The notes: generated by a model from the letters alone, not told the origin. Shown: positions 8,701 through 54,799, numbered from the stretch's first letter. The stretch: 64,000 bases of DNA from Macrostomum lignano (GCA_002269645.1 NIVC01001872.1:1-64000), one strand, 5' to 3'. Program-made: numbers and translations.

Positions 8701-11096
8701 AACTCCCTGATGCTCATATTCTCAACTCCCTGATGCTTATATTCTCAACTCCCTGACGCTTATATTCTCAACTCCCTGATGCTCATATTCTCAACTCCCT
8801 GATGCTTATATTCTCAACTCCCTGATGCTTATATTCTCAACTCCCTGATCCTCATATTCTCAACTCCCTGATGCTCATATTCTCAACTCCCTGATGCTCA
8901 TATTCTCAACTCCCTGATGCTTATATTCTCAACTCCCTGACGCTTATATTCTCAACTCCCTGATGCTCATATTCTCAACTCCCTGATGCTCATATTCTCA
9001 ACTCCCTGATGCTCATATTCTCAATCCCTGATGCTCATATTCTCAACTCCCTGATGCTTATATTCTCAACTCCCTGATGCTCATATTCTCAACTCTCTGA
9101 TGCTTATATTCTCAACTCCCTGATGCTTATATTCTCAACTCCCTGATGCTTATATTCTCAACTCCCTGATGCTCATATTCTCAACTCCCTGATGCTTATA
9201 TTCTCAACTCCCTGGTGCTTATATTCTCAACTCCCTGATGCTCATATTCTCAACTCCCTGATGCTCATATTCTCAACTCCCTGATGCTTATATTCTCAAC
9301 TCCCTGATGCTTATATTCTCAACTCCCTGATGCTCATTTTCTCAACTCCCTGATGCTCATATTCTCAACTCCCTGATGCTCATATTCTCAACTCCCTGAT
9401 GCTCATATTCTCAACTCCCTGATGCTCATATTCTCAACTCCCTGATGCTCATATTCTCAACTCCCTGATGCTCATATTCTCAACTCCCTGATGCTCATAT
9501 TCTCAATCCCTGATGCTCATATTCTCAACTCCCTGATGCTTATATTCTCAACTCCCTGATGCTCATATTCTCAACTCCCTGATGCTTATATTCTTAACTC
9601 CCTGATGCTTATATTCTCAACTCCCTGATGCTTATATTCTCAACTCCCTGATGCTTATATTCTCAACTCCCTGATGCTCATATTCTCAACTCCCTGATGC
9701 TTATATTCTTAACTCCCTGATGCTTATATTCTCAACTCCCTGATGCTTATATTCTCAACTCCCTGATGCTTATATTCTCAACTCCCTGATGCTCATATTC
9801 TCAACTCCCTGATGCTTATATTCTCAACTCCCTGACGCTTATATTCTCAACTCCCTGATGCTCATATTCTCAACTCCCTGATGCTCATATTCTTGGTAAC
9901 TGTGATGCTTAATTGGTGCTGTAAAAATGTTTAATTTGTTGTGCAGGTGATCGAGTTACATGGAATAAACGAAGGGCATATAGAGTAACATGAGTGTGAA
10001 TTTTATACGAGTTCGATAAAAATGAACACTTATTATATAACTTGAAAGGTGAACTTGAATTGTACTTACTGATTTTTTCTAAACACTGGAATATTTTACA
10101 GGATTTATGGTTGGAAATTCAGAATATTGTAATGCTTCAAATTTAAACTATAACAAGTTAAGAACTACTGGAAACTTTTCTTAACAGCTATACTGGTACT
10201 TACTCAAAGTCTGCAATCCCTGCATATTCTTCAGCTCCTGCACGACTTCCTCAACTTTGCTCAGCTGATTGTTGTGCAGCAAGAGAGTTTTGAGTCCTGT
10301 AAGCTGTCCCAATGAGCCACTGATGCTGATCAGCTTGTTGTTGTGCAGGTACAAGTCCCCTAGCCGAAGGTTGTCTTTCAAACAGTCCACTTTTAACAGC
10401 TGAAATTTTCAGGCAGTGATTTTCATCACACGGGTCTAAAACTAGCTGTAATAATTTTAAACAAGACACCAGAAATGTACTCACCCTGTTGCCATTAAGC
10501 CACACTGCTTGAAGATTAGGGAAGCAATGAAGTGATGGAATCGTTCCCAATGATCTGAAGTACGAAATATATGTAGCTAAAATTTCGTTTTATAAAATCA
10601 GTACCTGCATCAATATGGATACTGACTGAGAAACTATCATAAGTAAAGCCTATAAGAAAGACTCACAGTTTTCCTAGATAAAGTTCTTCGACCTCAAACA
10701 AGCGCATTACATGCTGACTCTTCATTTGATTTTGAAGGTTCTAAAAGAAAAAATTCCGTATTCGAATATATAGGTCTACCAATATTGTGCAATAAATTTA
10801 AGTTTTAAGAACAAAATTGAATAGCGAGCTATTAAAGTAGAAATATGAGTTGCTACAAACTGTCAAAACATAAAAAAGGACACAAATTGGAACCAATTTT
10901 ACGCTAATTTGACGGATAAATTCAAGTGATGAGATGATAAAATAAAAGCTAGGTAATTATTCGGACGGCTACTTAATTTTTTTATTGCGATTCTTTTTTA
11001 AGTTACGCTCGTATACTCGTCTATCGCTCTCGACACGAGTTGCTAGGCTGGGCTTACCTGGTGCAAAGATGGATTCGCTTCTAATATGTGTTCCAT
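5740..11096 (-). CDS. LRRC72: Leucine-rich repeat-containing protein 72-like, 7 exons, about 280 aa
   Basis: Exons 11096-11058, 10740-10667, 10554-10485, 10399-10204, 8194-8105, 7334-7148, 5926-5740. All introns are GT-AG and the phases join into an 843-nt ORF. Peptides EVEELYLGKL, LQAVWLNGNR, LGDLYLHNNKL, LKTLLLHNNQL..VVQELKNMQGLQTL, LFDNPVAQEKHYRDYVIFHLPSVKVLDR, RLAFGSRV and FDWSRVPR match my recollection of LRRC72. Confidence 0.85.
6007..6985. repeat. 15-nt minisatellite (ggctttagcaccagg)n in the last LRRC72 intron
   Basis: About 65 copies with variant units; a cagtggcgccagcac variant block sits at the right end. Confidence 0.95.
8380..9893. repeat. 23-nt minisatellite (ctcaactccctgatgctcatatt)n in LRRC72 intron 4
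   Basis: About 65 copies; period measured between 8468 and 8491. Confidence 0.95.
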
Positions 11097-11667: not shown

Positions 11668-21687
<10,020 letters not shown>

Positions 21688-27895: not shown

Positions 27896-28842
27896 GTGGC
27901 TCCCATTGGTCAGTTTTGACCCCTTCGCAGCCAATCACTATGGCTGCAATGTACATCATGTACTTTATAAGTGCCAGTTCAAACTCACGTGGTTCTGCTC
28001 GGCTCCAGAGCGAACCCGCAACTTGCACTGCTCTGACTCTCCTGCTGCCTGCATTTGTTCAAAGTCTGCTTGGCTCAATGAAATCCTGTTGCATGCTGGT
28101 CTGCGCGCATTTGCCAGTCTGTGTGCTGCTTTTGCATGCCATTGTGCTGCTTTTGCACGCCATTGTGCTGCTTTTGCATGCCATTGTGCTGCTTTTGCAT
28201 GTTATATTGTTATTGTGCTGCTTTTGCATGTTATTGTGCTGCACCTTTTGTACGTCTTGTTCAGCTTGAACAATGAGTGACTTTTATAAGCAAATATACC
28301 TGACACTGCACCAATTTACATTTATCAACATGGTTACATATGTTCATTCAATTGTTTCTTTGATAGCAGCGTTTAAGCTACAAAGGAATTTGAAATGCTT
28401 CAAACCGAATGCATTACAAACTGAAATGCTTCCAATATCCACCTGCAGTTTATAACCTCTAAAATTCTGAAAAAATACGGTATCAATACCGTCCACTATG
28501 TACTCGTTAAATTTGACTGCGCAATCAGAGCTCAATTGGATTCAGGGCTGCTCAATGTACTACTAATTCAAGTAGCCACACCCTGGCATTGCAGCAGTTC
28601 TGCTTAGCACAGGCGGCCGCAATCTGAGCAGGCAGGGTGAGAAGGTATTCGCTGCAGCTGCTCCAGGGCCAATAAAATCTGCTGCACAGGCGGCCGCTGC
28701 CCTGCCGGACTCTCGGGCTGAGCTGAGACACCTGCGACTGAGCTTGCAGTTATGGCACAGCCAACGCCATTTCCTGACAAAAAAATAAGTAAAGTTCAAG
28801 TGAGGAAACCGAAAGCATAACAATATTTGTAAGCTTGATTGC

Positions 28843-30640
28843 AGTTGCAGGAACTCACTCACATGTTTGAATGTGCAGCTTGGGTGTCTCAATTGCAGTT
28901 ACAGGAACTCACTCACATATTTGAATGTGCAGCTTGGGTGCCTCAATTGCAGTTGCAGGAACTCACTCACATGTTTGAATGTGCAGCTTGGGTGCCTCAA
29001 TTGCAGTTGCAGGAACTCACTCACATGTTTGAATGTGCAGCTTGGGTGTCTCAATTGCAGTTGCAGGAACTCACTCACATGTTTGAATGTGCAGCTTGGG
29101 TGCCTCGATTGCAGTGGCAGGAACTCACTCATATGTTTGAATGTGCAGCTTGGGTGCCTCAATTGCAGTTGCAGGAACTCACTCACATGTTTGAATGTGC
29201 AGCTTGGGTGCCTCAATTGCAGTTGCAGGAACTCACTCACATGTTTGAATGTGCAGCTTGGGTGCCTCAATTGCAGTTGCAGGAACTCACTCACATGTTT
29301 GAATGTGCAGCTTGGGTGCCTCAATTGCAGTTGCAGGAACTCACTCACATGTTTGAATGTGCAGCTTGGGTGCCTCAATTGCAGTGGCAGGAACTCACTC
29401 ACATGTTTGAATGTGCAGCTTGGTTGCCTCAATTGCAGTTGCAGGAACTCACTCACATGTTTGAATGTGCAGCTTGGGTGCCTCAATTGCAGTTGCAGGA
29501 ACTCACTCACATGTTTGAATGTGCAGCTTGGGTGTCTCAATTGCAGTTGCAGGAACTCACTCACATGTTTGAATGTGCAGCTTGGGTGCCTCGATTGCAG
29601 TGGCAGGAACTCACTCATATGTTTGAATGTGCAGCTTGGGTGCCTCAATTGCAGTTGCAGGAACTCACTCACATGTTTGAATGTGCAGCTTGGGTGCCTC
29701 AATTGCAGTTGCAGGAACTCACTCACATGTTTGAATGTGCAGCTTGGGTGCCTCAATTGCAGTTGCAGGAACTCACTCACATGTTTGAATGTGCAGCTTG
29801 GGTGCCTCAATTGCAGTTGCAGGAACTCACTCACATGTTTGAATGTGCAGCTTGGGTGCCTCAATTGCAGTGGCAGGAACTCACTCACATGTTTGAATGT
29901 GCAGCTTGGTTGCCTCAATTGCAGTTGCAGGAACTCACTCACATGTTTGAATGTGCAGCTTGGGTGCCTCAATTGCAGTTGCAGGAACTCACTCACATGT
30001 TTGAATGTGCAGCTTGGGTGTCTCAATTGCAGTTGCAGGAACTCACTCACATGTTTGAATGTGCAGCTTGGTTGCCTCAATTGCAGTTGCAGGAACTCAC
30101 TCACATGTTTGAATGTGCAGCTTGGGTGCCTCTATTGCAGTTGCAGGAACTCACTCACATGTTTGAATGTGCAGCTTGGTTGCCTCAATTGCAGTTTCAG
30201 GAACTCACTCACATGTTTGAATGTGCAGCTTGGTTGCCTCAATTGCAGTTTCAGGAACTCACTCACATGTTTGAATGTGCAGCTTGGTTGCCTCAATTGC
30301 AGTGGCAGGAACTCACATGTTTGAATGTGCAGCTTGGGTGCCTCAATTGCAGTTGCAGGAACTCACTCACATGTTTGAATGTGCAGCTTGGGTGCCTCAA
30401 TTGCAGTTGCAGGAACTCACTCACATGTTTGAATGTGCAGCTTGGGTGCCTCAATTGCAGTGGCAGGAACTCACTCACATGTTTGAATGTGCAGCTTGGG
30501 TGCCTCAATTGCAGTTGCAGGAACTCACTCACATGTTTGAATGTGCAGCTTGGGTGCCTCAATTGCAGTTGCAGGAACTCACTCACATGTTTGAATGTGC
30601 AGCTTGGGTGCCTCAATTGCAGTTGCAGGAACTCACTCAG
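28843..30640. repeat. 54-nt minisatellite ending at the acceptor of ankyrin exon A1
   Basis: About 33 copies of catgtttgaatgtgcagcttgggtgcctcaattgcagttgcaggaactcactca. Confidence 0.95.
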
Positions 30641-33600
30641 CCGGACCCCAAAAACCGGGCAAGCGTCGGAGACTCACCAGCCGATCTCCGGAATCTCGCC
30701 CACGATGTCATCCGAGGTGACTTCGGCCAAGTGCGGCGGCTGGCAACGCGCCAACTGGTCACCAGCGCTGATGTAGCTCGTCGAACCGTCCTCATGCTGG
30801 TGGCCGACGCTCCTGAGACTCCCGTGCACACTGAAAAGTGCATCTTGTACTTATTTGAGGTGGGCGCAAACCCCAAGGCGGCTGACGCAAACGGCGACAC
30901 GGCTGCGCACCTGGCAGCCCGGCGGGACCACCTGCGGCTGCTGGCGCTGCTGTCGTTCGATGCAAAGTGGCTGCGGAACGACAACGGCGCCACTCCGCTG
31001 ATGGAGGCGGCGCGGACTGGAAGCTGGAAATGCGCCAAGCACCTGCTGCACCTGCTCAGGCAGCGAAGGTTCAATGAGTGCGAGAAGCACGGAAACTCGA
31101 AGAGGTCGCGGCTGCTCGGACTGGAGGATCGCGAGGGTCGAACGGCGTCGGACCTGGCGAGGCTCAGCGGCCACTCAGAGCTGGCCAGCTACATCGAGCG
31201 GTGAGTGAGCAGATCGCTGCTGTGTCCATCAAGTTTTGCAGCATTCGGCTGGGGTGGCCAGAGCTGCAGTCTCAGGCCAGCCAATCAGAGCCAGTCAGCT
31301 AAGCTTGTCTCTGGCTTAGTGCATGTGAAAAATTTAAGAGTGGTGATTAGTCACTCAAAAACTCTCACTTCTAGACACTGGGGACCAAGTATATCCTCGG
31401 GTCAAATATCTCTGACGGTAGCGGCTCCTCGTAGGCTTCGAGGTTTGGCTTCGGTGAATCGCTACTTCCGCGAGTCCTTGACTTTATCTGTGGGTCGACC
31501 GAAAGCGAGAGCGAATCAGAATTCTTGACGGTGTCCTCGAGCTCGAGGTGCAGTCTCAGGCCAGCCAATCAGAGCCAGTCAGCTGAGCTTGTCTCTGTCT
31601 GACTGTTTGATGGGCGAGAGCCGTGATTGGCTGGCTGCCTCCCAGCCAATGGGGTGACGGTTGATCTCAGTCGAAAATGGAAGCTGTAGGGCCTCGGTGT
31701 GTAGTGAGTGTGTGTGGGTTGAGCTGCAGATGGAGAACTGGGAGGCTGTGCGTGAGTGCTTTGTGTGACATTGTGAGATGGAAGGAAACTCATGCTGCAG
31801 AAATGGAAAATGAGCTGCGTGTGAGAAGTCGGATGCGCTATCGCCGATGCTGATTGTTGCAGAGCTGCTGCAGTCCTCTTGGAAACTCCATCTGCCAGCA
31901 GCACAGATATTTAAGAAATTTCTTTTTACTAAATTTTTCATGAAAATTAAATCCTACAACTTAAGATTATTATTTAGCGATTGAGGTTGTAGAATTTGAG
32001 AAAATGTCAAATTCGCAGCTCATTTTTGCTGTTGCAGGGAGATGCGGCTGGTTGTGAATGCACATGGCGAGATCTCCGGCTTGACAGCCCAGGTGAGCGG
32101 TGCCGATGCGGCTGCAGCTGAGCAGCTGTGCTCAAATTTCCCGCTCGCCTTTGCAGGAGGAGCGGGATCGACTGGAACTGCAGCGGCTGGCCAAGTCGGG
32201 CGACTCGGCAGGGCTGCGGCGAGCGGCGACCCGCGGCAATTGCGACCTGCCTTACAGTTTGGGTGTCACCGCGTTGATGTTGGCAGCTGGAAACAGATCG
32301 TGCGGTGATGAGGCTCTGTGGGAGCAGCTGGTGCAGCTGGGTGACCCCACCTGTGCGAATATATGGGGTATCAGTTACCTGCAGTGGGCAGCCAGGGCTG
32401 GCAATTCTGCCGCAGCCTCCGCTCTGCTGTCTGCCGGAGCCTCCGCCAATGCCAGGGGTCTGTGTGAATTCACGCCCCTCATGCATGCAGCCTTTGCGCC
32501 CCCCGCCACCGCCGCCGCAGTCGGTCGGGTTCTGCTGGACTCAGGGGCGGATTGGAGCCTGAAGGACAAATTCAGCAAGACTGCGCTGCGTTTGGCCACA
32601 GAGAAGAGGAGCGAACTGGCTGAGCTGCTGCGTGGGTGAGTTTCCATGGCGACTGAGAATGTCAGTTTATTTAAGATTAATTAGAGCAACTAATTAAAAT
32701 ACATATTACGAGCGACAAAAATTTTATAATTAATTGTTTAAGTAAGGATTACGTTAACTTTTAATAGTAAACTATTTTTTATAGAAGACCTAAGTTCTAA
32801 AATAATACAGTTTACATGTTTCAGATTTGAAGGAGACAGCTACTTCCAGGATCCTCTGTGAGTTTGCTACAGCACACACAGCTACAGCACACACAGCTAC
32901 AGCACACACAGCTACAGCACACACAGCTACAACACACAGCTACAGCACACAGCTACAGCACACAGCTACAGCACACAGCTACAGCACACACAGCTACAGC
33001 ACACAGCTACAGCACACACAGCTACAGCACACACAGCTACAGCACACAACTACAGCACACACAGCTACAGCACACACAGCTACAGCACACACAACTACAG
33101 CATACACAGCTACAGCATACACAGCTACAGCACACACAGCTACAGCACACACAGCTACAGGACACACAGCTACAGCACACAGCTACAGGACACACAGCTA
33201 CAGCACACAGCTACAGCACACAGCTACAGCACACAGCTAAAGCACACAGCTACAGCACACAGCTACAGCACACAGCTACAGCACACAGCTACAGCACACA
33301 GCTACAGCACACAGCTACAGCACACACAGCTACAGCACACAGCTACAGCACATACAGCTACAGCACACAGCTACAGCACATACAGCTACAGCACACACAG
33401 CTACAGCACACAGCTACAGCACACAGCTACAGCACACACAGCTACAGCACACAGCTACAGCACACAGCTACAGCACACACAGCTACAGCACACAGCTACA
33501 GCACACACAGCTACAGCACACAGCTACAGCACATACAGCTACAGCACACACAGCTACAGCACACAGCTACAGCACACACAGCTACAGCACACACAGCTAC

Positions 33601-36600
33601 AGCACACAGCTACAGCACACACAGCTATAGCACACACAGAGCTACAGCACACAGCTACAGCACACACAGCTACAGCTACTTTCTAAACGTATCGGTTAGT
33701 CTCCAGACTCTCGTCCACGACGTCATCCGAGGTGACTTCGGCAAGGTGCAACGGCTGGCAACGAGCCAGCTGGTCACCAGCGCTGATGCAGCTCGTCGAA
33801 CCGTCCTCATGCTGGCGGCCGACGCTCCTGAGACTCCCGTGCACACTGAAAAGTGCATCTTGTACTTATTTGAGCTGGGCGCGAACCCCAAGGCGGCTGA
33901 CGCGAACGGCGACACGGCTGCGCACCTGGCAGCCCGGCGGGACCACCTGCGGCTGCTGACACTGCTGTCGTTCGATGCGAAGTGGCTGCGGAACAAAAAC
34001 GGCGCCACTCCGCTGATGGAGGCGGCGCGGACTGGAAGCTGGAAATGCGCCAAGCACCTGCTGCACCTGCTCAGGCAAGCAATGTTCAATGAGTGCAGAC
34101 AGCACGGAAACTCGAAGAGGTCGCGGCTGCTCAAAAAGAAAGATCTCGAGGGTCGGACGGCGTCGGACCTGGCGAGGCTCAGCGGCCACTCAGAGCTGGC
34201 CAGCTACATCGAGCGGTGAGTGAGCAGTTCGCTGCTGTGTCCATCAAGTTTTGCAACATTCGGCTGGGGTGGCCAGAGCTGCAGTCTCAGGCCAGCCAAT
34301 CAGAGCCAGTCAGCTGAGCTTGTCTCTGTCTGACTGTTTAATGGGCGAGAGCTGTGATTGGCTGGCTGCCTCCCAGCCAATGGGGTGACGGTTGATCTCA
34401 GTCGAGAATGGAAGCTGTAGGGCCTCGGTGTGCAATGAGAGTGTGTGGGTTGAGCTGCAGATGGAGAACTGGGAGGCTGTGCGTGAGTGCTTTGTGAGAC
34501 ATTGTTAGATGGAAGGAAACTCATGCTGCAGAAATGGAAAATGAGCTGCGTGTGAGAAGTCGGATGCGCTCTCGCCAATGCTGATTGTTGCAGAGCTGCT
34601 GCAGTCCTCTCGGAAACTCCATCTGCGAGCAGCTCAGAGAATTAAGAATTTCTGTTCACTAAATTTATCATGCAAACTTTATCGTACAACTGGGAATTTA
34701 ATTTTAGCGATCGTAGTTGTCGGACTCGAGAAAATGTCAAATTCGCAGCTCATTTTTGCTGTTGCAGAGATATGCGGCTGGTTGTGGATGCAGATGGCAA
34801 GATCTCCGGCCAGACAGCCCAGGTGAGCGGCATCTGCGGTGCCGATGCGGCTGCAGCTGAGCAGCTGTGCTCAAATTTCTCGCTTGCCTTTGCAGGAGGA
34901 GGCGGATCGACTGGAACTGAGGCGGCTGGCCAAGGTGGGCGACTCGGCGGGGCTGCGGCGAGCGGCGACCCGCGGCAGCTGCGACCTGACTGACAATGAT
35001 GGTTGCACCGCGTTGATGTGGGCTGCTGAGAACAGCTCGTGCGGTGATGAAGCTCTGTGGGAGCAGCTGGTGCAGCTGGGTGACCCCACCTGTGCGGATG
35101 TAGATGCTGACAGTTGCCTGCTCCGGGCAGCCAGGGCTGGCAATTCTGCTGCAGCCTCCGCTCTGCTGGCTGCCGGAGCCTCCGCCAATGCCACGAGTAT
35201 GTGGGAATTCACGCTTCTCATGTCGGCAGCCATCTGTGCGCGCCCCTCCGCCGCCGCCGCAGTCGGCCGGGTTCTGCTGGACTCAGGGGCGGATTGGAGC
35301 CTGAAGGACAGAGACGGCAGGACTGCGCTGGATTTGGCCACACAGAATGGAAAGAGCGAACTGGCTGAGCTGCTGCGTGGGTGAGTTTCCATGGCGACTG
35401 AGAATGTCTCTCTGACTTTGATTTATCATTGATAAACATTATGCTGTAATTTATGATTGAATATTGAGCAGCTGACTGCAGTTGCTCTGAGTGGGCATTT
35501 TTACATTTTTGTAGTTTAAATGGGCAGCAGGGACTGACTGAGCTGCATTGAGGGAGTTTGCAGTGCAGTTTGACTGCAGATTGCCAGTTGAATATTAATG
35601 TGAGCTGTGAGACAATACACTTGTTTGAGTAAATTTGGGTAAATTTTTTGAAGCTTTTTGTATTCTACATGGCTCTCAACTGAATTCCCTCTGACTTCAG
35701 ATTCCGCACTTCCTATTTAGGTACGACGGCAAGATTTACTTCTACGAGCCTCTGGCACTGCCGTGAGTTCCTACAGCACACAAAATAATTACTCTACTGT
35801 TAAAACGACTACAGCAGACAGCTACAGCATACAGCTACAGCACACAGCTACAGCACACAGCTACAGCACACAGCTACAGTACACAGCTACAGCACACACA
35901 GCTACAGCACACACAGCTACAGCACACACAGCTACAGCATACAGCTACAGCATACAGCTACAGCACACACAGTTACAGCACACACAGCTACAGCACACAG
36001 CTACAGCACACAGCTACAGCACACAGCTACAGCACACAGCTACAGCACACAGCTACAGCACACAGCTACAGCACACAGCTACAGCAAACAGCTACAGCAC
36101 ACAGCTACAGCACACAGCTACAGCACACACAGCTACAGCACACACAGCTACAGCACACAGCTACAGCACACAGCTACAGCATGCAAATTATCCCTGATTG
36201 CCTGAATCCGCATCCCCTCAGACCCGAAGGTCCCCCGTTCCTGAAGCGCTGGGATGCCCTTCGCCTCATCGGCCGCGGAGGCTTCGGTGAAGTCCACGAA
36301 GTTCGAACTGACACGGGCGTCACGTGCGCTGCCAAGACTCTCAGACTGCCTGTGCAGCTCGGTGATGAGCTGCCCTCTGTGAGCACAGAGATTCACAGAG
36401 CTGTCGAGAGCGAGAACCTGTGCCGACTGCGGCATCCCAACATCGTCAGGTTCTTGCACATCGCTCAGCCGGAGCCCGCCACAGTCGTTGTGTTCATGGA
36501 GCTGCTGGACGGCCGGAGCTTGGAGAGGTTTATCGACAACCAGCCGCTGGACGAGCTGACGATTCGAGACTTCAGCGAGCAGGTGAGCATTGTGCATCCT

Positions 36601-37199
36601 TGATGCTCCTGCTCCATGTTCCCATGAATGATGACTGCTCACTGACCGACCGACCGCAGATCTGCCGCGCGCTGCTCTACCTGCACAGCCGGCAGCCGCC
36701 CGTGATCCACAGAGACATCAACTGCTCGAACATAATTGTTTGTGCTGACAACACGCGAATCAAGCTGATCGACTTCGGCCTGTCAATCAAGCTGGAGCAG
36801 TCAGTCAGCCACATCTCAGCCTCCCCTCAGTCATTGCCCAAAGGCACTCTGAACTTCATGGCGCCAGAGCTGCTCGGAGCGGGAGAGTCAGACAGCGTGC
36901 AGTACAGCAGAGAGTCGGACATCTGGGCGTTCGGCTGCTCGGTCTTCCAGATGGCGTCCGGCGCGAGGCCGTTCGCGAACGCCAAAAGCCTGTTAGAAAT
37001 GGCCCAGCTAATCGACAGGAAGGGCGCCCCCGCCCTGCCGGACGGCCGGTCCGCAGAGCTGAGGGATTTCTACAGCCGCTGCACCGCCAAGGACCGCAGG
37101 AGGAGAAGACCCGCGCAGGAGCTGCTGGAGCACGAGTTCCTGACGGGCAGGAAGCTGCAGCCTGGATTCTTCAGCTCGTTTTTTAGTACAAGGAAATGA
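30641..37199 (+). CDS. Ankyrin-repeat / STE (MAP3K-like) kinase gene 1: two ANK modules plus kinase, about 1040 aa plus an unknown first exon
   Basis: Exons A1 30641-31200, D1 32038-32092, B1 32157-32635, C1 32825-32857, A2 33700-34215, D2 34768-34822, B2 34896-35380, C2 35721-35762, K1a 36222-36582, K1b 36660-37199. All introns are GT-AG and the phases join without a stop (3126 nt). ANK motifs GDTAAHLAARR, GATPLMEAART, GRTALDLA. Kinase motifs GRGGFGEV, CAAK, HPNIVRF, HRDINCSN, DFG, GTLNFMAPE, SDIWAFGC. Possible first exon 28752-28799 (weak). Confidence 0.8.
32865..33676. repeat. (cacagctacag/cacacagctacag)n 11/13-nt array filling intron C1-A2
   Basis: Starts about 8 nt after the donor gtgagt and ends just before the branch/acceptor region. 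Confidence 0.9.
35810..36179. repeat. (cacagctacag)n array filling intron C2-K1
   Basis: Same unit as 32865-33676. Confidence 0.9.
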
Positions 37200-41318: not shown

Positions 41319-42251
41319 CCCCGTTTTCAAGGAGAGCTGGGACTCCGTTCGCTTTGTTGCAAATGGATTTTTTGGTGACATCCAGGAAGTTGTCACAGAC
41401 AGAGGCATCAGGTGCGCCGCCAAGACTCTCAACCTGCCTGTGCAGCTCGGCGATAAGAAGGAGACGAAAACGAAGAATATCGATGAAGCTGTCGAGAGCG
41501 AGAGAAACCTGTGCCGACTGCGGCATCCCAACATCGTCAGGTTCTTGCACATCGCTCAGCCGGAGCCCGCCACAGTCGTTGTGTTCATGGAGCTGCTGGA
41601 CGGCCGAAGCTTGGAGAGGTTTATCGACAACCAGCCGCTGGACGAGCTGACGATTCGAGACTTCAGCGAGCAGGTGAGCATTGTGCATCCTTGATGCTCC
41701 TGTTCCATGTTCCCATGAATGATGACTGCTCACTGACCGACCGCTCGCAGATCTGCCGCGCGCTGCTCTACCTGCACAGCCGGCAGCCGCCCGTGATCCA
41801 CAGAGACATCAACTGCTCGAACATAATTGTTTGTGCTGACAACACGCGAATCAAGCTGATCGACTTCGGCCTGTCAATCAAGCTGGAGCAGATAGTCAGC
41901 CGCCACTCATCTTTCCCGGAGGCACCCAAAGGCACTCTGAACTTCATGGCGCCAGAGCTGCTCGGAATTGGCACCTCTGAATGCCTTCAGTGCAGCAGAG
42001 AGTCGGACATCTGGGCGTTCGGCTGCTCGGTCTTCCAGATGGCCTCCGGTGCCAAACCGTTCTTAAATGTCAAAAGCTTCTGGGAACTGGCATTGGATCT
42101 TTACAGGACCGGTGCCCCCGCCCTGCCAGACGGCCGGTCCGCAAAACTGAGGGATTTCTACAGCCGCTGCACTGCTAAGGACCGCAGGGAGAGAAGCTCA
42201 GCCCAGCAGCTGCTGGAGTTTCTGGCAAACTGTTCTGACTCGCAGCTCTAA
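41319..42251 (+). CDS. Second STE-like kinase module (K2), two exons
   Basis: Exons 41319-41673 and 41751-42251, same intron position as K1. Motifs ANGFFGDI, CAAK, HRDINCSN, DFG, GTLNFMAPE. Phase-2 acceptor; the upstream exon is undetermined. Confidence 0.8.
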
Positions 42252-45712: not shown

Positions 45713-46227
45713 GGCTGCTCTCTGCTGCCAGGGTGCTGTCTCAACTCTCACAGACAGAATACTGCAGTCAGAAATGAGCGCACAGTTTGCATGTATCAAC
45801 TGGCTGTGCTGCTCTTAGAAGGCACCGGCGCAGCCAGAAATAGGAGCAGCAGAAGTTCCACAGTTCCTCTGAAAACAAGCAATGACGGCAGAGGTCTGTC
45901 TCGGGCAGACTACGTTGGGCGATGGCATCTGGTGGACGTTCGGCGCTGTGCACTCTCTGGAGTCCATGAGAATCGTGCAAAGTACATGTACATTGTACAT
46001 GTCCTTTCTGCGAAATAAATATTGTACGAGTAATAGTACATTCTCCCATGTAGAGACTCACTAGCGACCCAGCTTAGACTCTCAGGAAGGACAGAGAAGT
46101 CCTCTGTGTCCCTGCATGGTCAATGCGATCCGAACCCAGCAGTGTCCTTTTTTATCAGCTGTGACTTCGAGATCGACAGCCAAAAGAGTTAAGACAGTTC
46201 AGACTCAGAGCCACTTCTAGTCGGAAA

Positions 46228-47362
46228 TCTGTATGTTCTATCTGTATGTTCCATCTGTATGTTCTATCTGTATGTTCTATCTGTATGTTCCATCTGTATG
46301 TTCTATCTGAGTGTTCCATCTGAGTGTTCTATCTGTATGTTCTATCTGTATGTTCTATCTGTATGTTCCATCTGTATGTTCTATCTGAGTGTTCCAACTA
46401 AGTGTTCTATCTGTATGTTCTATCTGTATGTTCTATCTGTATGTTCTATCTGTGTGTTCTATCTGTATGTTCTATCTGTGTGTTCTATCTGTGTGTTCTA
46501 TCTGTATGTTCTATCTGTGTGTTCTTTCCGTATGTTCTATCTGTATGTTCTATCTGTATGTTCTATCTGTATGTTCCATCTGTATGTTCTATCTGAGTGT
46601 TCCAACTGAGTGTTCTATCTGTATGTTCTATCTGTATGTTCTATCTGTATGTTCTATCTGTATGTTCTATCTGTGTGTTCTATCTGTGTGTTCTATCTGT
46701 ATGTTCTATCTGTGTGTTCTATCTGTATGTTCTATCTGTGTGTTCTATCTGTGTGTTCTATCTGTATGTTCTATCTGTGTGTTCTATCTGTATTTTCTAT
46801 CTGTATCTTCTATCTGTATGTTCTATCTGTATTTTCTATATGTATCTTCTATCTGTATGTTCTATCTGTATTTTCTATCTGTGTGTTCTATCTGTGTGTT
46901 CTATCTGTATGTTCTATCTGTGTGTTCTATCTGTGTGTTCTATCTGTATGTTCTATCTGTGTGTTCTATCTGTGTGTTCTATCTGTATGTTCTATCTGTA
47001 TGTTCTATCTGGATGTTCTATCTGTATGTTCTATCTGTATGTTCTATCTGTATGTTCTATCTGTATGTTCTATCTGGATGTTCTATCTGTATGTTCTATC
47101 TGTATGTTCTATCTGTATGTTCTATCTGTATGTTCTATCTGTATGTTCTATCTGTATGTTCTATCTGTATGTTCTATCTGTATGTTCTATATGTGTGTTC
47201 TATCTGTGTGTTCTATCTGTATGTTCTATCTGGATGTTCTATCTGTATTTTCTATCTGTATCTTCTATCTGTATGTTCTATCTGTATTTTCTATATGTAT
47301 CTTCTATCTGTGTGTTCTATCTGTATGTTCTATCTGTATGTTCTATCTGGATGTTCTATCTG
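46228..47362. repeat. 13-nt minisatellite (tctatctgtatgt)n
   Basis: About 85 copies. Confidence 0.95.
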
Positions 47363-48224
47363 CCATTGTTGAGTCCTTTCTTCATCTCCTCTCTTATCTT
47401 TGCAATTTTTCACTGCCCACTCAACTCTGCAAGTCTGCACTCCAAACGCTACTGCCATAAGTAGTATGCATTCCGTACGGAGAAGAATCAGAGACCGAGG
47501 CTCGCATTCGGCCAATAAGCCGTGAGCAGTGAATCTCTCTGACAATGTCTTCTGAGGCCGATAAAATAACTGCTGTGCTGGGGGGGGGCGGCTGGTCATG
47601 CAGTTTTCTTTTCTTTTTAGGCTGAGTTGAGATAATCTGATCGAAGCGCGCATAATGGGCAATGGAACTTCGAAGGTACAGCATTTTTATTTTAAAGTAC
47701 TTACTTTTGCGAGTTCAAGCAGTAAATTAAAACAAACTTTTTGCCTTGTTCTTACGTCCTCATGTTCAGCTTGGGTGCAATTGCAGTTGCAGAAACTCAC
47801 TTAGCCAAACTATAGAAACCGGGCAGTAGCAGAAACTCAGCAGCCAGGCATAAAACATCACACTTATCATATCTCTTCTACTTCTATTCGTACTCCCATT
47901 CCTATTTTTGCGCGTGGTGCCCCTAATCGGTTCGTTTTATCCCTACTTGTGTGTATTTAGAGCGTATTCGCGAAGTTGCACGATCAATAATAGCCTCTTC
48001 GCGCGTTATCAAGTTTTTTTTATACGAGCTAATATAACCGCTCTCGCCTCGGTCAGCCGACTTTTACTGCCACGACAAAATGTACCCTCACTCGAAAATT
48101 TCCGATCAAACAGTGCCAGCCGATAAAAGTCAGAAATGTACATTAAATTAACGTAGATTGCAAAGTCTTGAGGAGCACTCTCAGAGTAGCAATGAAAGGC
48201 GCGGAGAGAGATGGAGAACAAGGA

Positions 48225-48229
48225 GAGAA

Positions 48230-48314
<85 letters not shown>

Positions 48315-48347
48315 GAGAGAGAAAGAGAGAGATGGAGAGAGAGATGG

Positions 48348-48380
<33 letters not shown>

Positions 48381-48428
48381 TAGATGGAGAGAGATTAGAG
48401 AGAGAGAGAGGTAGAGAGAGAAGAGAGG
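48225..48428. repeat. (GA)n microsatellite at the PLE 3' end
   Basis: Read directly. Confidence 0.95.
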
Positions 48429-48456
48429 TAACGGCGTGTTGAAAATATTGAATATG

Positions 48457-48494
48457 GGCTACCGGTTTCGAGCCTCTGGGCTCTTCGTCAGGCC
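48457..48494 (-). ncRNA. Minimal type I hammerhead ribozyme motif (PLE 3' end)
   Basis: Minus strand: ggc CTGACGA a gagcc caga ggctc GAAA CCGG TA gcc. Core, stem I (ggc/gcc), stem II (gagcc/ggctc), palindromic ACCGGT stem III, GUA triplet. Confidence 0.8.
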
Positions 48495-48768
48495 GTAATG
48501 CAATGCAAATAGGTCTTTTAAGTAATTTTTCTGAGTCTGATAAAATTGATGAGTACTTGTACGAGTACATATGAGGGATGTACTGCCTGTTTCGTCTAGC
48601 GGGAGCATGGTTTATTTTGTAGCTTATCAAAGTTTTTAGCTATCTCGTTGGAAAGCCAGACCGTAGATGGGTGAAAAGGAAGGACCAATGGGATGGGTCG
48701 GAGAAGGTGATTGTCGACCCTGATGCTCGCATTCGGCGGTTTGTCAGTCCCCAGTTTTTAATCCAGAT

Positions 48769-50804
48769 TTATTCCCTTAGTTCGATTTTGTTGCTATTAA
48801 GAACTTGTTCGATAGCAATGGAGAAAAAGTTTGCAATCGAGTGATTGGGAGTGAGAAAGTGCTCTAACCCCGAAGTAACGATTCTCCTGTTAATATTTGA
48901 CCTGTGCTGGTTCATTCTATCTCTCATTGTTCTTCTAGTCATACCTACATAGAAGATTTTCCCAGGGTGGCACTGGTTACAGGAGATGCCATAGATGATG
49001 TTCTTGGAGCCACAGGACAGGCTCTGAGAGACTAAAACATCGGAAGCCGGTTTCAGCCCCTGGGCGGAGAGAGCAGGCGGTGAGTGGGTGCAGCATTTGC
49101 AGCGGGATGACCCACAGGGATGGAACCCTTTGGGAAGCAAACACAGATTGGTTGTTGGTCCCGCAGTCCAGTTCGTAAGTTTGAGGACCTCCTTTTTGCA
49201 GTTTCTAAGAAAAATCTTCAAGTAGCCTAATTGCTTGAGTTCCGATTTTAAAGAATTGAAAGCATCGTTGAAAGACTTGTAGTCATCACAGATTCGAGCG
49301 TACCGAAGGATTTGGGATTTTACTACCCCCTTGAAGGTGTGTGACGGATGGAAGGACTGTCGGTGCAGCAATCTATGAGTGTCTGTTTCTTTTGAAAACA
49401 GTTGTGTTGTGAAGCGGTTTTCAGCTTTCTTGATGGTCATGTCAAGAAAACTGACCTCAGTTGATGAGGAGCTGACGGTGAGTTTGATGTTGGGGTTGAT
49501 TGAATTTAGGTGTCGAACAAATTCTGTCAGAGCTTCAGCCGGGTGGTCCCAGTGAATGAAGATATCATCTATGTACCTAAAATAGATGTTGGGCTTATAA
49601 AGAGCAGTTTTCAGGGCAGTTTCCTCCCAGAGGCTCATGAAGAGGCAGGCATAGCTGGGCGCAAATATGCGCCCCATGGCTGTACCTCTAAGTTGTAGGA
49701 AAATAACTTTGTCAAATTCAAAGTCATTCCTGTACAAACACAATTCCAGTAGCTTTATTATTTCAGCATCCGGTCTAATGGGATCCGGGTATCGGTTAAA
49801 GAATTCCTGGATCGCTGCAATGCCCTGATCTATTGGGATCATGGAGTACAGACTCTGGACATCACAAGTTGCCAGAGTCGAACCTTCCTTGCAGCTTTTA
49901 TCCATAAGGTGTGCCTTGAAGTCATAGGAGTCCTTAATGAAAGTGGGTTGCGCTTGGGCAATCGGTTTTAGAAAGAAGTCTATGTACTTTTCGGCCCCAA
50001 TTGCTTCAGAACTGCATCCGCTAACAATAGGTTTGCCTGCTGGGACCCGAAAGGGGATCAGCCAGGTGGCCGGGTCCTTGTGAATTTTTGGGAGCAGGTA
50101 GAAATGCCGGGGACGGAAGTTCTCTCCGGGACAAAGAAAAGAAAACTGTTTCTTCGATATGAACTTTCTATTACATAAATCGAGGAAGATCCCCCTGATA
50201 AGTTCCGCAGTCTCGGGTTGCAGTGGCTGGTCCAGCTGTTGATAGGCATTAGTGTCAAGCAATTGGTTGTAGGCTGCAAATTCGTAATAATTATGGTGCA
50301 TGATGACCACTGCGTTACCTTTGTCCGGCTTTTTATAAGGACGGAGCTGTTTCGCTTGAGCCCCTGAATCGCTTTGGTCTCTGGCACCTCTAGGTTGCCT
50401 TTGATCTGTACCGTTGTCAAATTCTCTACCAGTTTTTGGTTCTCAAGCACAAACAAGTTGCACTCATCCCTTCTACGTTTTGAGGGAACCTCCTTTACTT
50501 ATTTCCCCATGAAGGGGGCGGGCTGCTATTGGCGAGCCCCTCTTTTGAAAAAATCTGTCCAGAAAAGTTTCCGATAAAATTCCGTCATGCAGTTCCTCAG
50601 ATCATCGAAATCAAGGGCTTGGGTTGGGATAAAATTAAGTCCCTTATCTAGCAGCCTCGTCTCGGACTCGGAGAGTTGGAAGGTAGGGTGTAGATTCAAA
50701 ATGTTGCCTTCCAGTTTGGGAGGCCTACAGTAGTCAGCTAGTTTAAAGTTCTCAGCCAGGAAGCCAGCGCCAGTATATAAAGTCAGGCGCTGAGAAGGAT
50801 ACAA
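48769..50804 (-). pseudogene. PLE reverse transcriptase + GIY-YIG endonuclease (frameshifted)
   Basis: N-terminal ILNLHPTFQLSESETRLLDKGLNFIPT, KPDKGNAV-type region, FYLLPKIHK, CDVQSLYSMI, GTAMGRIFAPSYACLFM, YFRYIDDIF, FLDMTI, CGSSRCKCC linker and NIIYGISCNQC..FYVGMTRRTMRDRMNQHRSNI. Confidence 0.92.
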
Positions 50805-50920
50805 TTGGTTTAAGAGGAGAAGAGGCAGTAAGAGTAACAGGTGAGATCTGGTAGCGATGCTCGTTTAATAAGTAATAGAGAAATGAAGGCCAACACCAAC
50901 ATATAATAAATTATTTTAAT

Positions 50921-50959
50921 AGCCAACGCGTTTCGACACAAGCGGTCATCTTCAGGGCT
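50921..50959 (-). ncRNA. Hammerhead ribozyme motif (left arm)
   Basis: agcc CTGAAGA t gac cgcttgt gtc GAAA CGCG TT ggct. Confidence 0.8.
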
Positions 50960-51219
50960 TGCACTCATGATTCACATACAGTTCAGTATACTTAAATAGA
51001 GAAAATCAAGATCTGTACATGGCAATAGACAAATGGGTTCAGTCCGGTCGATAATTGTGCATTACGAGACGTTTTCTGTGTGATGGCCAAATAATTTATT
51101 ATAGTTTCGTCTCGTAATGTACAATTATCGACCGGACTGAACCCATTTGTCTATTGCCATGTACAGATCTTGATTTTCTCTATTTAAGTATACTGAACTG
51201 TATGTGAATCATGAGTGCA

Positions 51220-51258
51220 AGCCCTGAAGACGACCGCTTGTGTCGAAACGCGTTGGCT
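51220..51258 (+). ncRNA. Hammerhead ribozyme motif (right arm)
   Basis: agcc CTGAAGA c gac cgcttgt gtc GAAA CGCG TT ggct; palindromic ACGCGT stem III, GUU triplet. Confidence 0.8.
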
Positions 51259-51377
51259 ATTAAAATAATTTATTATATGTTGGTGTTGGCCTTCATTTCT
51301 CTAATAGGTGAGAGTTTCTTACTCAGAATTTGAGTCAATCCTTCACCGCTGGCAAAGGGCGGAACAAGAAGGATCTC

Positions 51378-52385
51378 TCAGTAGATCGATGGCCTCAGAG
51401 AGCGACTCTCGCCAGTGGTCTGTGCTGAGCAGCTCGTCCGCCAGGACCAGCACCGTTGACTGAGCGCATTGCCGGTTCCGCAGGGCGGCCGACCTTCGTA
51501 GTGATGGTAAGGCTGACATTGAGTACTCATGCACCTCTGTGATTGCCAGCAGTTTGAGGCCCTCGAAAGGCTTTGGGCAGAGGACCAGGTTCCGGAAGTC
51601 CCTGCTGATGATGAGCGTACCGGGCTGCTCAAAGGTGAGTCATTCAGATGCGGCCTGTGGCGTTCCGGACCACCAGGGGAGTCCTCAGAGTCCGGCGATG
51701 GTAAGCGACGTTCAGCAGGTGAAGCAGGCAGTCCCACCCGTGGAAGAGGCGGGGTCACAAAAAGGTCGTCAGCCGCCGACGTACAGCCGTTGTCGGGTGA
51801 GGCGACTTCGGTGGTCCCACCGGCCGCCGGACTGCCTACCGGAGCCCCAACCGCAACCGCTGGCGGGTCGTTGCTTATCGTCGCATCGGCGCTCGCTGCC
51901 ACGTCCCCAATAGCGCCGTCCGCTACCGAGTCGGCGTTGGTCTCCGTGCTCGTGCTAGCCGTGGATTCATTGTTTGTTGCTGCGATCGTGCTGGCTGTCG
52001 TGGTGTCGTCCTCCACGTTAGAGCAGACGACCTCTGAGATCCTACGATGTTTGGCAGATTGGGCGCTCTCTTCGAGATCGACTGGTGCCAGGCTTGTAGC
52101 CAGAGAGATTACGGTGCTGGGAATGGCAGTCTTGGTGGCACTAGGTGCAGATGGGGCCAAGAAAGCCCCGGTGGCACCGCTGTTGGGATCTTCGTGAGTC
52201 CAGCGGAAGGTCAAGTTGAACTGGCGGCCACGTTTGTGGTGTTGCGGGGGAATTCGATGATAAAAATTGGCCTGACAGTCGCTTGACATGGTCAGAAGAC
52301 TGCCATGAAATAGATCGAGAGATAAACAAGGCGCAGTCGCTGACTTAGCTTTTAGATCGAAGGTTCTGGTGCACCTGATTGACAA
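51378..52385 (-). pseudogene. AlkB-like 2OG-Fe(II) dioxygenase C-terminal fragment plus Ala/Ser/Thr/Pro-rich linker (PLE N-terminal extension)
   Basis: RTFDLK..LDLFHGSLLTMSSDCQANFYHRIPP..RQFNLTFRW matches the AlkB pattern LxHGSLLxM..Q..WxHxIP..RxNLTFR. The HxD half is cut off by the (GA)n tract. Confidence 0.7.
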
Positions 52386-52696
52386 AGAGAAAGAGAGAGA
52401 GAGAAAGAGAGAGAGAGAGAGGGGGAGAGAGAGAGGGCACCGGCACCATGATTGGCAAGTTGTTTATTTAGTATTGGTCTAACGCAATTTTATATACAGG
52501 GACTCAAGCACTTTTAGTCTGTACTCACTTGAGCTCTTATGAATGGTAAAAAATTATTTGCGAAAAATTTACTAAGCTAGACCTTGCAATCTACTGTATA
52601 TTTAATTTACATTTCTGATTTTTATCGACCCCGTTTCACGTCTAAATTTATATATATACGGTTAATAAATACAGAAATAAATCGTTGCTAATTTTA

Positions 52697-52737
52697 AGAC
52701 CCTGACGATGCCTGACGCGAACCGAAACATGTCGCAT
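52697..52737 (+). ncRNA. Degenerate hammerhead motif of another PLE-like terminus
   Basis: CTGACGA..GAAACATGTC with palindromic ACATGT; stems I and II pair poorly. Confidence 0.4.
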
Positions 52738-54799
52738 ATCAAAAAACGATAGCGCTCACATTCTTAATTTTACTATTTATCAAACGCGCAATTTTCCGCA
52801 ATGAAACTTGAGTTCCATTTTCGTTATTTGTCCTATTAGCAATTGGACATAACGATTCTCGCCCAGCTCGTCATCCGAGGTGACTTCGGACAGGTGCCGC
52901 AGCTGGCAACGCGCCAGCTGGTTACTTGCGCTAATGCAGCTCGTCGGAACGTCCTCATGCGGGTGTTCGGCGCTCCTGAGACTCCCGTGCACACTGAAAA
53001 GTGCATCTTGTACTTATTTGAGCTGGGCGCGAACCCCAAGGCGGCTGACGCGAACGGCGACACGGCTGCGCACCTGGCAGCCCGGCGGGACCACCTGCGG
53101 CTGCTGACGCTGCTGTCGTTCGATGCGAAGTGGCTGCGGAACAAAAACGGCGCCACTCCGCTGATGGAGGCGGCGCGGACTGGAAGCTGGAAATGCGCTA
53201 AGCACCTGCTGCACCTGCTCAGGCAGATAAGGTTCAATGAGTGCTCTGAGCACGGAAACTCGAAGAGGTCGGAGCTGCTCGGACTGAAGAATCGCGAGAA
53301 TCGGACAGCGTCGGACCTGGCGAGGCTCAGCGGCCACTCAGAGCTGACCAGCTACATCGAGCGGTGAGTGAGCAGTTCGCTGCTGTGTCCATCAAGTTTT
53401 GCAGCATTCGGCTGGGGTGGCCAGAGCTGCAGTCTCAGGCCAGCCAATCAGAGCCAGTCAGCTGAGCTTGTCTCTGTCTGACTGCTTGATGGGCGAGAGC
53501 TGTGATTGGCTGGCTGCCTCACAGCCAATGGGGTGCCGGTCGATCTCAGTCGAGAATGGAAGCTGTAGGGCCTCGGTGTGCAGTGAGAGTGTGTGGGTTG
53601 AGCTGCAGATGGAGAACTGGGAGGCTGTGCGTGAGTGCTTTGTGAGACATTGTGAGATGGAAGGAAACTCATGCTGCAGAAATGGAAAATGAGCTGCGTG
53701 TGAGAAGTCGGATGCGCTCTCGCCAATGCTGATTGTTGCAGTGCTGCTGCAGTCCTCCTGGAAACTCCATCTGCGAGCAGCTCAGATAATTAGGAATTTC
53801 TGATTATTTAGTCTATTATTAAAATTTTATTGTAAAACAAAAACATATATTTTGGCGATCGCATTTGAGTCGGATTTGAGAAAATTGCAAAATTCGCTGC
53901 TCATTTTTCCTGTTGCAGGGAGATGCGGCTGGTTGTGGATGCACATGGCTGGATCTCCGGTCTTACAGCCCAGGTGAGCGGAATCTGCAGTGCCGATGCG
54001 GCTGCAGCTGAGCAGCTGTGCTCAAATTTCCCGCTCGCCTTTGCAGGAGGAGGCGGATCGACAGAAACTGCAGCGGCTGGCCGAGGCGGGCGACTCGGCA
54101 GGGCTGCGGCGAGCGGCGACCCGCGACAGCTGCGACCTGCCTGACAAATGGGGTCGCACCTCGCTGATGTGGGCAGCTCACAACAGATCGTGTTGTGATG
54201 AGGCTCTGTGGAAGCAGCTGGTGCATCTGGGTGACCCCACCTGTGCAGATAAATATGCTGGCAGTTGTCTGCACCATGCAGCACGGGCTGGCAATTCTGC
54301 CGCAGCCTCCGCTCTGCTGAGTGCCGGAGCCTCCGCCAATGCCACGGGGCTAGGAGACACGTCCCTCATGGAGGCAGCCGAATTTACGCCCCCCACCGCC
54401 ACCGCCGCCGCAATCGTTCGGCTTCTGCTGGACGCAGGGGCGGATTGGAGCATTAAGAACAACGACGGCAAGACTCCGCTGGATTTGGCCGTGGAGAACG
54501 GAAATATCGAAGCCGCTGAGCTGCTGCGTAGGTGAGTTTCCATGGCTGTTGTATATTCAATGAGACACAAATATGGTTGATGGATCTGATTCCCTTTTCT
54601 AGCCGGCCTCTTCGCTCTTATATATTATTTATATCTTCTACACCATTTTACCTTCTATTTTGAACAAACTCTTGTTTAAAAAAACAAGCATATTAGGGCT
54701 TGCGGAAATTAAATTCAAAGTCCCTTTCTATTGAAACAGAAAAAATTCAATTCAGACTGTCTGTGGCCAAAATTGTCTCAGAGTGACGCGCACGCGCAA

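Follow-up and report, generated by a model that had tools for sequence, protein, structure and literature searches.

A degraded, 5'-truncated two-ORF Penelope-like element with part of an AlkB-type domain: a candidate lineage for retrotransposon-encoded template demethylation

Extra enzymatic domains are rarely fixed by retrotransposons, and each case points to a step of the life cycle that is limited by the host or by chemistry. In this study, a 64,000-nucleotide stretch of Macrostomum lignano DNA (GCA_002269645.1 NIVC01001872.1:1-64000; below, at its whole length, the window) was analysed around a Penelope-like element (PLE) whose upstream open reading frame (ORF1) begins inside an AlkB-type dioxygenase domain. 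The locus is likely to be an old copy, now dead and truncated at its 5' end, of an endonuclease-positive (EN+) PLE with two ORFs, from a family also present among the protein models of M. lignano, in which an AlkB-bearing ORF1, a frameshift at the ORF junction and demethylation of the template would belong together.

Layout, identity and decay of the element

One PLE occupies 48431-52385 on the minus strand and sits inside a (GA)n microsatellite. Its parts are listed from the 5' end of the element; P0242 is an M. lignano protein model and L001 and L002 are related loci, all described below.

52386-52455, (CT)n on the element strand: 5' flanking microsatellite, part of the target site (sequence; repeat family D1)
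52194-52385 (-): C-terminal third of the AlkB domain, in ORF1 (Pfam PF13532; alignment A1; P0242 from residue 966)
51634-52193 (-): Ala/Ser/Thr/Pro-rich ORF1 linker, in the AlkB frame (collinear with P0242 residues 1011-1200)
51346-51636 (-): remnant of the ORF1 C-terminal domain (..QSTVLVLADELLSTDHW..), in another frame (tblastn with P0242 residues 1202-1288)
50873-51306, no strand: foldback (hairpin) insertion in ORF1 with TATTA on both sides (inverted repeat I1)
50748-50872 (-): final ORF1 codons (..SAPDFI[+TA]LALASWLRT..; frames compared with the P0242 C-terminus ..PPDFILALASWLRTLN)
50741-50747 (-): predicted site of -1 frameshifting, with the slippery heptamer T_TTA_AAC read in the ORF1 frame (same register in 11 related loci)
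50738-50740 (-): ORF1 stop codon TAG, immediately 3' of the heptamer (sequence, frame reading)
50319-50747 (-): ORF2, N-terminal portion containing NILNLHP and LLDKGLNFIP, -1 frame (tblastn of L001 and L002 ORF2)
48772-50334 (-): ORF2 core, comprising the reverse transcriptase (RT; ..RYIDDIF..), a CX4CxxC linker (CGSSRCKCC) and GIY-YIG with CCHH (Pfam; alignment with L001 and L002 ORF2)
48769-48771 (-): premature TAA in the C-terminal region of the endonuclease, RE*IWIK against REMKWIK in relatives (alignment)
48431-48768 (-): decayed end of ORF2 and 3' end of the element (residual likeness to the C-termini of relatives, judged by eye)
48200-48430, (CT)n on the element strand: 3' flanking microsatellite (Tandem Repeats Finder, TRF, 48223-48427, period 2, 102 copies)

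Self-BLAST returned the foldback's own arms only, and thus no second copy of the element in the window.

The PLE identity is carried by a 513-residue frame at 48769-50310 (-), in which Pfam profiles for the RT (RVT_1, E = 9.5e-7) and for the GIY-YIG endonuclease (E = 1.5e-3) were matched; the latter lies under its gathering score in the window and is present in homologues. This frame has 481 PLE homologues at E <= 1e-10, bearing PF28514 and PF26215, and ORF2 is 49-52% identical to the ORF2 of L001 and L002 over 530 residues (tblastn). The PLE-type N-terminal DKG motif (LLDKGLNFIP, at ~50630-50660), the RT core (RYIDDIF) and, at the C-terminus, a GIY-YIG domain bearing CCHH (IIYGISCNQC..FYVGMT..NQH..EHF) are all found, as in the canonical EN+ PLEs (Neptune, Nematis and Penelope-Poseidon; Arkhipova 2006; Craig et al. 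2021, PMC8557442). Upstream of the GIY-YIG domain stands a zinc-finger-like CX2-5CxxC linker (CGSSRCKCC), with cysteines that are invariant in alignment A2; by motif alone it can be likened to the linker that PMC8557442 describes for Neptune and Nematis. Tandem arrays, seen here in relatives (period 7529 nt in L006 and ~4570 nt in L007), 5' truncation and insertion into microsatellites are also common to this lineage and to canonical PLEs, and a microsatellite bias is known for PLEs from the same paper. However, the target is (GA)n here and (TA)n or (CA)n in the canonical elements as described there. Furthermore, canonical EN+ PLEs are given a single ORF in the abstract of that paper (PMC8557442), whereas two are found here, a large upstream ORF1 being coupled to the RT ORF through a predicted -1 frameshift site.

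The window copy is dead and 5'-truncated. The truncation took everything upstream of the middle of the AlkB domain, including the helical domain and the HxD half, and what is left is interrupted by five in-frame stops, two of them in ORF1 and three in ORF2, and by three frameshifts, of which ORF1 has two and ORF2 one. In ORF1, a small frameshifting deletion lies at ~51633-51636, a 2-nt TA insertion relative to the M. lignano model lies near 50780, and one stop at 51343-51345 is followed shortly downstream by another. The ORF2 frameshift falls at ~50319-50334, and the ORF2 stops at 50526-50528, 50499-50501 and 48769-48771.

ORF1 is further interrupted by a 434-nt foldback, the arms of which (50873-51071 and 51108-51306, 199 nt each) are 98% complementary and enclose a 36-nt loop; the whole interval is skipped by the gene model P0242. 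The foldback together with one TATTA makes 429 nt, or 143 codons, so that excision restores one frame, ..ETLT|YYLLNEH.., a junction which the initial annotation had read correctly. It had also let the joined frame run toward KGLNFIP, and here it was mistaken: ORF1 ends at the TAG at 50738-50740, and KGLNFIP belongs to ORF2 in the -1 frame. The TATTA flanks look like a 5-bp target duplication made by the insertion of a foldback element or of a miniature inverted-repeat transposable element (MITE). Rfam likened the foldback to the plant MIR821 precursor below threshold, at 134 bits where the gathering score is 249, probably only on account of the long hairpin.

The AlkB domain and the architecture of ORF1

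A 335-residue ORF at 51378-52385 (-) begins right at the microsatellite, and its first 61 residues match PF13532 (2OG-FeII_Oxy_2; 2OG, 2-oxoglutarate) at profile positions 127-194 of 194 with E = 6.6e-7. This bears out the initial annotation, which had recognized the C-terminal part of an AlkB fold on the RT strand within the (GA)n boundaries. Since the domain is represented by its C-terminal third alone, the score (30.2 bits) falls 1 bit short of the Pfam gathering score (31.2). Of the residues that bind Fe, the distal His (FYHRIP) is retained in the fragment, as is R..NLTFR, the motif that binds 2OG; the HxD...H triad is incomplete, HxD lying upstream of the truncation point. The distal Arg of NLTFR is invariant across alignment A1, and the proximal 2OG-binding Arg of the RxxxxxR pair is replaced by Gln in the window (GRQFNLTFR) as against Arg in the six other sequences of the alignment.

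A database search with the 335-residue frame was flooded by low-complexity candidates and gave a single relative, UniRef A0A1I8GH21 (P0001, 'Fe2OG dioxygenase domain-containing protein'). The 1309-residue P0242 is a member of its 90% cluster, and it is through these two models that the M. lignano family member is known here. Over its last ~670 residues, P0242 passes from a helical domain (..LLDKLLRCYHHRAV..) into an AlkB domain that is complete and has WHADDE (Pfam E = 6e-19); the Ala/Ser/Thr-rich linker known from the window comes next, and a short C-terminal region closes the model with ..PPDFILALASWLRTLN. In this model, ~640 unrelated N-terminal residues are fused on and 15 residues of the AlkB fold are skipped; both are probable gene-model artefacts caused by repeats. 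Transposon ORF1 fragments such as A0A1I8GH21, annotated as host Fe2OG dioxygenases, are a source of annotation error in repeat-rich invertebrate genomes. By tblastn, the window is 79% identical to P0242 over 252 residues (52379-51633, from residue 966) and 91% identical over the 87 residues 1202-1288 (51636-51376, in frame -2 as against frame -3 upstream). The end of ORF1 is likewise shared, LALASWLRTLN* in the window corresponding to ..ALASWLRTLN in P0242; its final LN is encoded by the TTA AAC of the slippery heptamer, with the stop next. No match to P0242 residues 1-965 was found in the window, which places the 5' truncation in the middle of the AlkB domain, at the microsatellite.

RT homologues were sought among 5.8 billion proteins, and the contigs of the nearest, 43-53% identical to the window RT, were fetched. 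Had AlkB been a chance neighbour, other copies of this RT would be expected to lack it; the reverse was found, and a complete AlkB domain lies upstream of the RT on the same strand in all five contigs (L001-L004 and L006), which are those of the closest RTs having enough upstream sequence. The claim of the initial annotation that AlkB belongs to the element is thereby upheld. In these contigs, the distance from AlkB to the RT is ~1-2 kb and ORF1 has roughly 1000 residues: L001 carries a called 1012-residue gene with PF13532 (E = 5e-31) immediately upstream of the RT gene, ORF1 is open over 980, 1078 and 999 residues in L002, L004 and L006, respectively, and it is broken by one frameshift in L003. 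L006, a sequence from a marine biofilm metagenome, contains AlkB in both of its two identical tandem units. The Pfam E-values of the relatives' domains range from 5e-32 to 7e-21 (tblastn and Pfam). The six full-length AlkB sequences (P0001/P0242, L001-L004 and L006), at 33-50% overall identity, all keep HxD and the distal His, the Arg pair and the residues N..Y, which bind 2OG. The best match by sequence in the PDB is human ALKBH3 (E = 5e-29 for L001, 6e-22 for L006 and 9e-27 for the M. lignano family), with ALKBH2 next at ~1e-14. A profile search with the AlkB alignment gave 7975 matches, which were overwhelmingly cellular or bacterial AlkB proteins and included one further element fragment, P0122. 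No AlkB was found among 29 Joint Genome Institute (JGI) metagenome loci obtained by a scan with the RT alignment; these loci revealed an AlkB-less esterase ORF1 and a wider spread of the frameshift site.

AlkB is almost certainly an integral part of the element. The alternative, that an exon or pseudogene fragment of a host ALKBH3 happens to adjoin an unrelated PLE, could appeal to the presence of only the C-terminal third of the domain, 1 bit below the Pfam threshold, and to the resemblance of ..ttctctttgtcaatcag|G, immediately upstream, to a polypyrimidine tract with an AG splice acceptor. However, the AlkB ORF runs on for ~300 codons through the linker and the C-terminal region to the slippery site, collinear with P0242, the same AlkB-RT placement recurs in five diverged relatives, and immediately upstream lies an ankyrin ORF on the opposite strand. 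A tblastn search of the window for other AlkB-coding pieces, with the ORF, P0001, P0242 and L001 ORF1 as queries, came up empty, and the host-exon reading was rejected; it is extremely improbable.

In intact members, a Pro-rich N-terminus opens ORF1, the helical domain and AlkB follow, and a disordered linker of Ala/Ser/Pro type leads to an SGNH/GDSL-like domain at the C-terminus. Across the lineage it lies upstream of ORF2 and has roughly 500-1080 residues. L007-L010, L037 and L038, at ~40-46% RT identity, have an ORF1 that lacks AlkB but shares the helical domain and includes a GDSL/SGNH esterase; for L012, L016 and L020 the matches were weaker and GDSL-only, with no helical domain detected, L016 and L020 being 35-36% identical to P0003, the alignment reference. 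Pfam Lipase_GDSL_2 was matched by L007 with E = 9e-6. An SGNH assignment was judged on block I, GDS(L/N), which holds the catalytic Ser, on block III, GxN, and on block V, DxxH, and the corresponding blocks IGDSN, GIN and D.IHW are present in L006, L007, L008, L037 and L038. AlkB and an intact-looking esterase thus occur together in L006. The GDS motif is degenerate in L002-L004 and in the window family, which has VLADELLS in a shortened domain. The esterase ORF1s were located at 714-2168 (L007), 327-2108 (L037), ~3543-5151 (L038) and ~2500-3111 (L006), and a helical-domain motif, ..R.HHH.., is conserved in them and in L008-L010. No match by sequence to a solved structure was obtained for the esterase/helical ORF1 of L007.

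AlkB is located between the helical and esterase domains, a position which in the AlkB-less elements is disordered linker. On the proposed history, AlkB would have been inserted into the linker of an older helical-plus-esterase ORF1 of the kind still seen in AlkB-less relatives; the window copy would have entered (GA)n without anything upstream of the middle of AlkB, and would have acquired the foldback, frameshifts and stops later. In a neighbour-joining (NJ) tree of the RT (600 columns, 100 bootstraps), the window groups with L001-L004 at 70%. An NJ tree of AlkB has an animal ALKBH3 clade at 100% and a clade of bacterial AlkB at 82%, and the element domains fall outside both.

The junction of the two ORFs and the predicted role of AlkB

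ORF2 overlaps the end of ORF1 in all related loci, and its frame is -1 relative to that of ORF1. The initial annotation had placed AlkB at the N-terminus of the RT protein; AlkB does lie upstream on the same strand, but in a separate ORF1, and only the predicted frameshift fusion would have it N-terminal to the RT. Likewise, the single ORF that was to join an HxD..H..R AlkB domain to RT/GIY-YIG proved to be two ORFs, the complete AlkB domain itself being found in the relatives.

At the end of ORF1, TTTAAAC in the X_XXY_YYZ register is invariant in 12 of 12 loci, the window included, and conservation drops to ~30-50% in its flanks, taken as 45 nt downstream and 30 nt upstream. No Met precedes the conserved KGLxF motif of ORF2 in ten of 11 loci. 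An invariant heptamer in register, joined to a -1 ORF2 without a start codon, predicts programmed -1 frameshifting, and on these grounds ORF2 is very probably reached by a -1 frameshift at U_UUA_AAC. Since the heptamer is also found in AlkB-less elements, it appears as a feature of a wider group of two-ORF PLEs. TTTAAAC junctions were noted in L001-L004, L006-L010, L012-L014, L038 and the window, with ~40-50% RT identity among the elements. Frameshifting of the U_UUA_AAC type is known from retroviruses and coronaviruses; there too the identical heptamer lies at the overlap, with the polymerase in the -1 frame. Unlike at those sites, no conserved downstream pseudoknot was found here and the stop often abuts the heptamer. 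Alternatively, ORF2 might be reached through termination-reinitiation, after internal initiation at a non-AUG codon or in a spliced transcript, which is unlikely: the stop immediately following the heptamer in seven of 12 loci is an arrangement also found in termination-coupled mechanisms, strong structure downstream of the heptamer was not found, and PLEs are able to retain introns according to the legend of Fig. 1 of PMC8557442. However, a canonical heptamer in exact register has been perfectly conserved despite protein identities of ~40-50%, and AUG is absent ahead of the conserved N-terminal motifs of ORF2.

If -1 frameshifting operates, most ribosomes would yield the ORF1 protein and a fraction would slip to give an ORF1-RT-endonuclease fusion, as in Gag and Gag-Pol. 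The ORF1 protein, in the Gag position, would probably bind the RNA of the element. Its AlkB domain would then strip marks of the 1-methyladenine (m1A)/3-methylcytosine (m3C) type oxidatively from the RNA template, and possibly from single-stranded cDNA. Such marks, arising as chemical damage or imposed by the host, would block reverse transcription or flag the RNA, and the template would be cleaned before or during target-primed reverse transcription. Cellular ALKBH3 removes m1A and m3C oxidatively from single-stranded DNA and RNA, and both modifications stall reverse transcriptases; hence the AlkB pre-treatment used in tRNA sequencing. Demethylation of the element's own RNA fits with the ALKBH3-type sequence and with the intact catalytic residues of the relatives, and on this sequence evidence we consider the proposal evenly poised.

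The main rival to template cleaning, for which support is best, is that AlkB, while integral to the element, counters epitranscriptomic control by the host, erasing N6-methyladenine (m6A) or m1A marks that send TE transcripts to decay or silencing, or demethylating host RNAs. The catalytic residues are intact in the full-length sequences, in keeping with such a function, and the AlkB ORF of an orchid Gypsy element demethylates m6A in vitro, mark erasure having been proposed there (PMC9289625); however, the domain is ALKBH3-like and not like ALKBH5, FTO or ALKBH9B, and we regard host-mark erasure as possible but rather improbable. A purely non-catalytic part, with AlkB binding RNA or single-stranded DNA or acting structurally in a Gag-like ORF1, would have a precedent in the neighbouring SGNH-like domain, which lacks the catalytic GDS in L002-L004 and in the window family, so that enzymatic modules of ORF1 can decay into non-catalytic ones. 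Retention of the active-site residues (HxD, distal His, Arg pair and N..Y) in six of six full-length AlkB sequences, despite their low identity, makes this reading very unlikely.

Several observations weigh against the account of an AlkB-bearing, frameshifting and template-demethylating PLE. HxD is gone from the window copy, which is unable to make an active AlkB enzyme, and there is thus no sign of AlkB activity in this genome. A hammerhead ribozyme is usual in canonical PLEs, whereas Rfam detected none in 47500-53000 at E <= 1, where divergent ribozymes could escape and the copy is 5'-truncated, and none in L001-L004, L006 and L007 at E <= 0.1. No convincing conserved stem-loop or pseudoknot was found 5-9 nt downstream of the slippery site: minimum free-energy folds of the 100 nt downstream of the heptamer, made with a tool that cannot predict pseudoknots, have z-scores of -0.4 to +1.1, and small hairpins 10-15 nt downstream are seen in L001, L002, L004 and the window but not in L006 or L007. 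In the RT tree, AlkB-bearing L006 joins AlkB-less L007 and L008 with 100% bootstrap support, and the AlkB tree gives no further resolution of the element domains; one gain of AlkB followed by loss, or two gains, are both possible on these grounds. Finally, enzymes of the ALKBH3 type prefer m1A and m3C, and a role against m6A-based control is therefore not specifically supported.

Known systems and the surroundings of the element

Human ALKBH3 (PDB 2iuw, 8jnr) shares the HxD..H Fe(II) triad and the Arg pair with the full-length element domains; it is a stand-alone cellular enzyme of ~286 residues, whereas the element AlkB is part of ORF1. The Ty3/Gypsy elements of the orchid Phalaenopsis are also a retrotransposon lineage with a fixed AlkB-type domain, proposed to act on the element's own RNA (PMC9289625), and their AlkB ORF is biochemically active (Alvarado-Marchena et al. 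2022, PMC9289625). However, those elements belong to the long terminal repeat (LTR) class and to plants, their domain is near the plant m6A demethylases and it forms an extra, separate ORF in 25-kb elements; the present elements are animal PLEs with an ALKBH3-like domain embedded in an ORF1 in the Gag position. AlkB domains also occur in the replicase polyproteins of Alphaflexiviridae, Betaflexiviridae and Closteroviridae, as cited in PMC9289625. In these plant RNA viruses, AlkB is likewise part of a polyprotein of an RNA-templated replicator and repair or demethylation of its own RNA has been proposed, but they use an RNA-dependent RNA polymerase without reverse transcription, infect plants and acquired the domain independently. 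The independent acquisitions, in plant RNA viruses and again in orchid Gypsy elements, make the present case part of a convergent pattern.

The esterase also has parallels. SGNH/GDSL domains stand in the Gag position, with a helical or coiled-coil region, in the ORF1 of CR1, L2 and RTEX long interspersed nuclear elements (LINEs) and in GDSL ORFs known from rotifer LTR elements and from Athena/Terminon PLEs, as they do here. GDSL ORFs are known in the endonuclease-lacking Athena/Terminon PLEs and in LINE ORF1s (PMC5408684, PMC3905857); the esterase ORF1 described here belongs to EN+ PLEs, and its GDS motif is degenerate in the main AlkB-bearing clade. A figure legend in PMC8557442 mentions, for some type of PLE, an ORF1 that may be set off by a frameshift with a pseudoknot. 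The full-text literature, which was searched without Repbase or Dfam, yielded no published description of a PLE with the AlkB/ORF1-frameshift architecture; the initial annotation, which knew of no such fusion in PLEs, agrees with this outcome.

We tentatively propose, as slightly short of probable, an animal EN+ PLE lineage with two ORFs, in which an ORF1 with an ALKBH3-type demethylase (in some members together with an SGNH esterase) would be expressed both alone and as a U_UUA_AAC frameshift fusion, and in which the element would thus carry its own m1A/m3C eraser. If true, this lineage would, to our knowledge, provide the first case in animals of a nucleic-acid demethylase encoded by a retrotransposon, and for PLEs the first accessory enzyme of this kind. 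The placement of an ALKBH3-type domain before the RT suggests that m1A/m3C methylation of the template is a real barrier or control point in animal retrotransposition. The textbook single-ORF picture of EN+ PLEs would also be revised, and the system lends itself directly to tests of demethylation, of HxD and of frameshifting.

Other features of the window surround the element. A 28-nt inverted repeat (48121-48148 and 52600-52627, two mismatches), unique in the window and with none expected by chance, brackets (GA)n and the PLE; without the PLE, the bracketed unit would measure ~550 bp, and the microsatellite target itself may lie inside a small MITE-like element. The ankyrin ORF that adjoins the insertion on the opposite strand is one of two pairs of ORFs, two with ankyrin repeats and two with protein-kinase domains, at 30275-31204 (+), 52843-53367 (+), 36420-37199 (+) and 41511-42251 (+); the closely similar patterns of Pfam matches within the pairs suggest a local segmental duplication. 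Another transposon is represented by a 353-residue ORF at 15323-16384 (-) with helix-turn-helix and DDE_3 transposase domains of the Tc1/mariner type, and further ORFs encode a LIM-domain protein and PSF3. The density of minisatellites is very high, with 40 TRF rows, some overlapping, of periods 13-54 nt and up to 87 copies; examples lie at 6006-6992, 8367-9893, 28838-30639 and 46227-47362, and some units recur, such as the GCTACAGCACACA-type arrays at 32866, 35809 and 56130.

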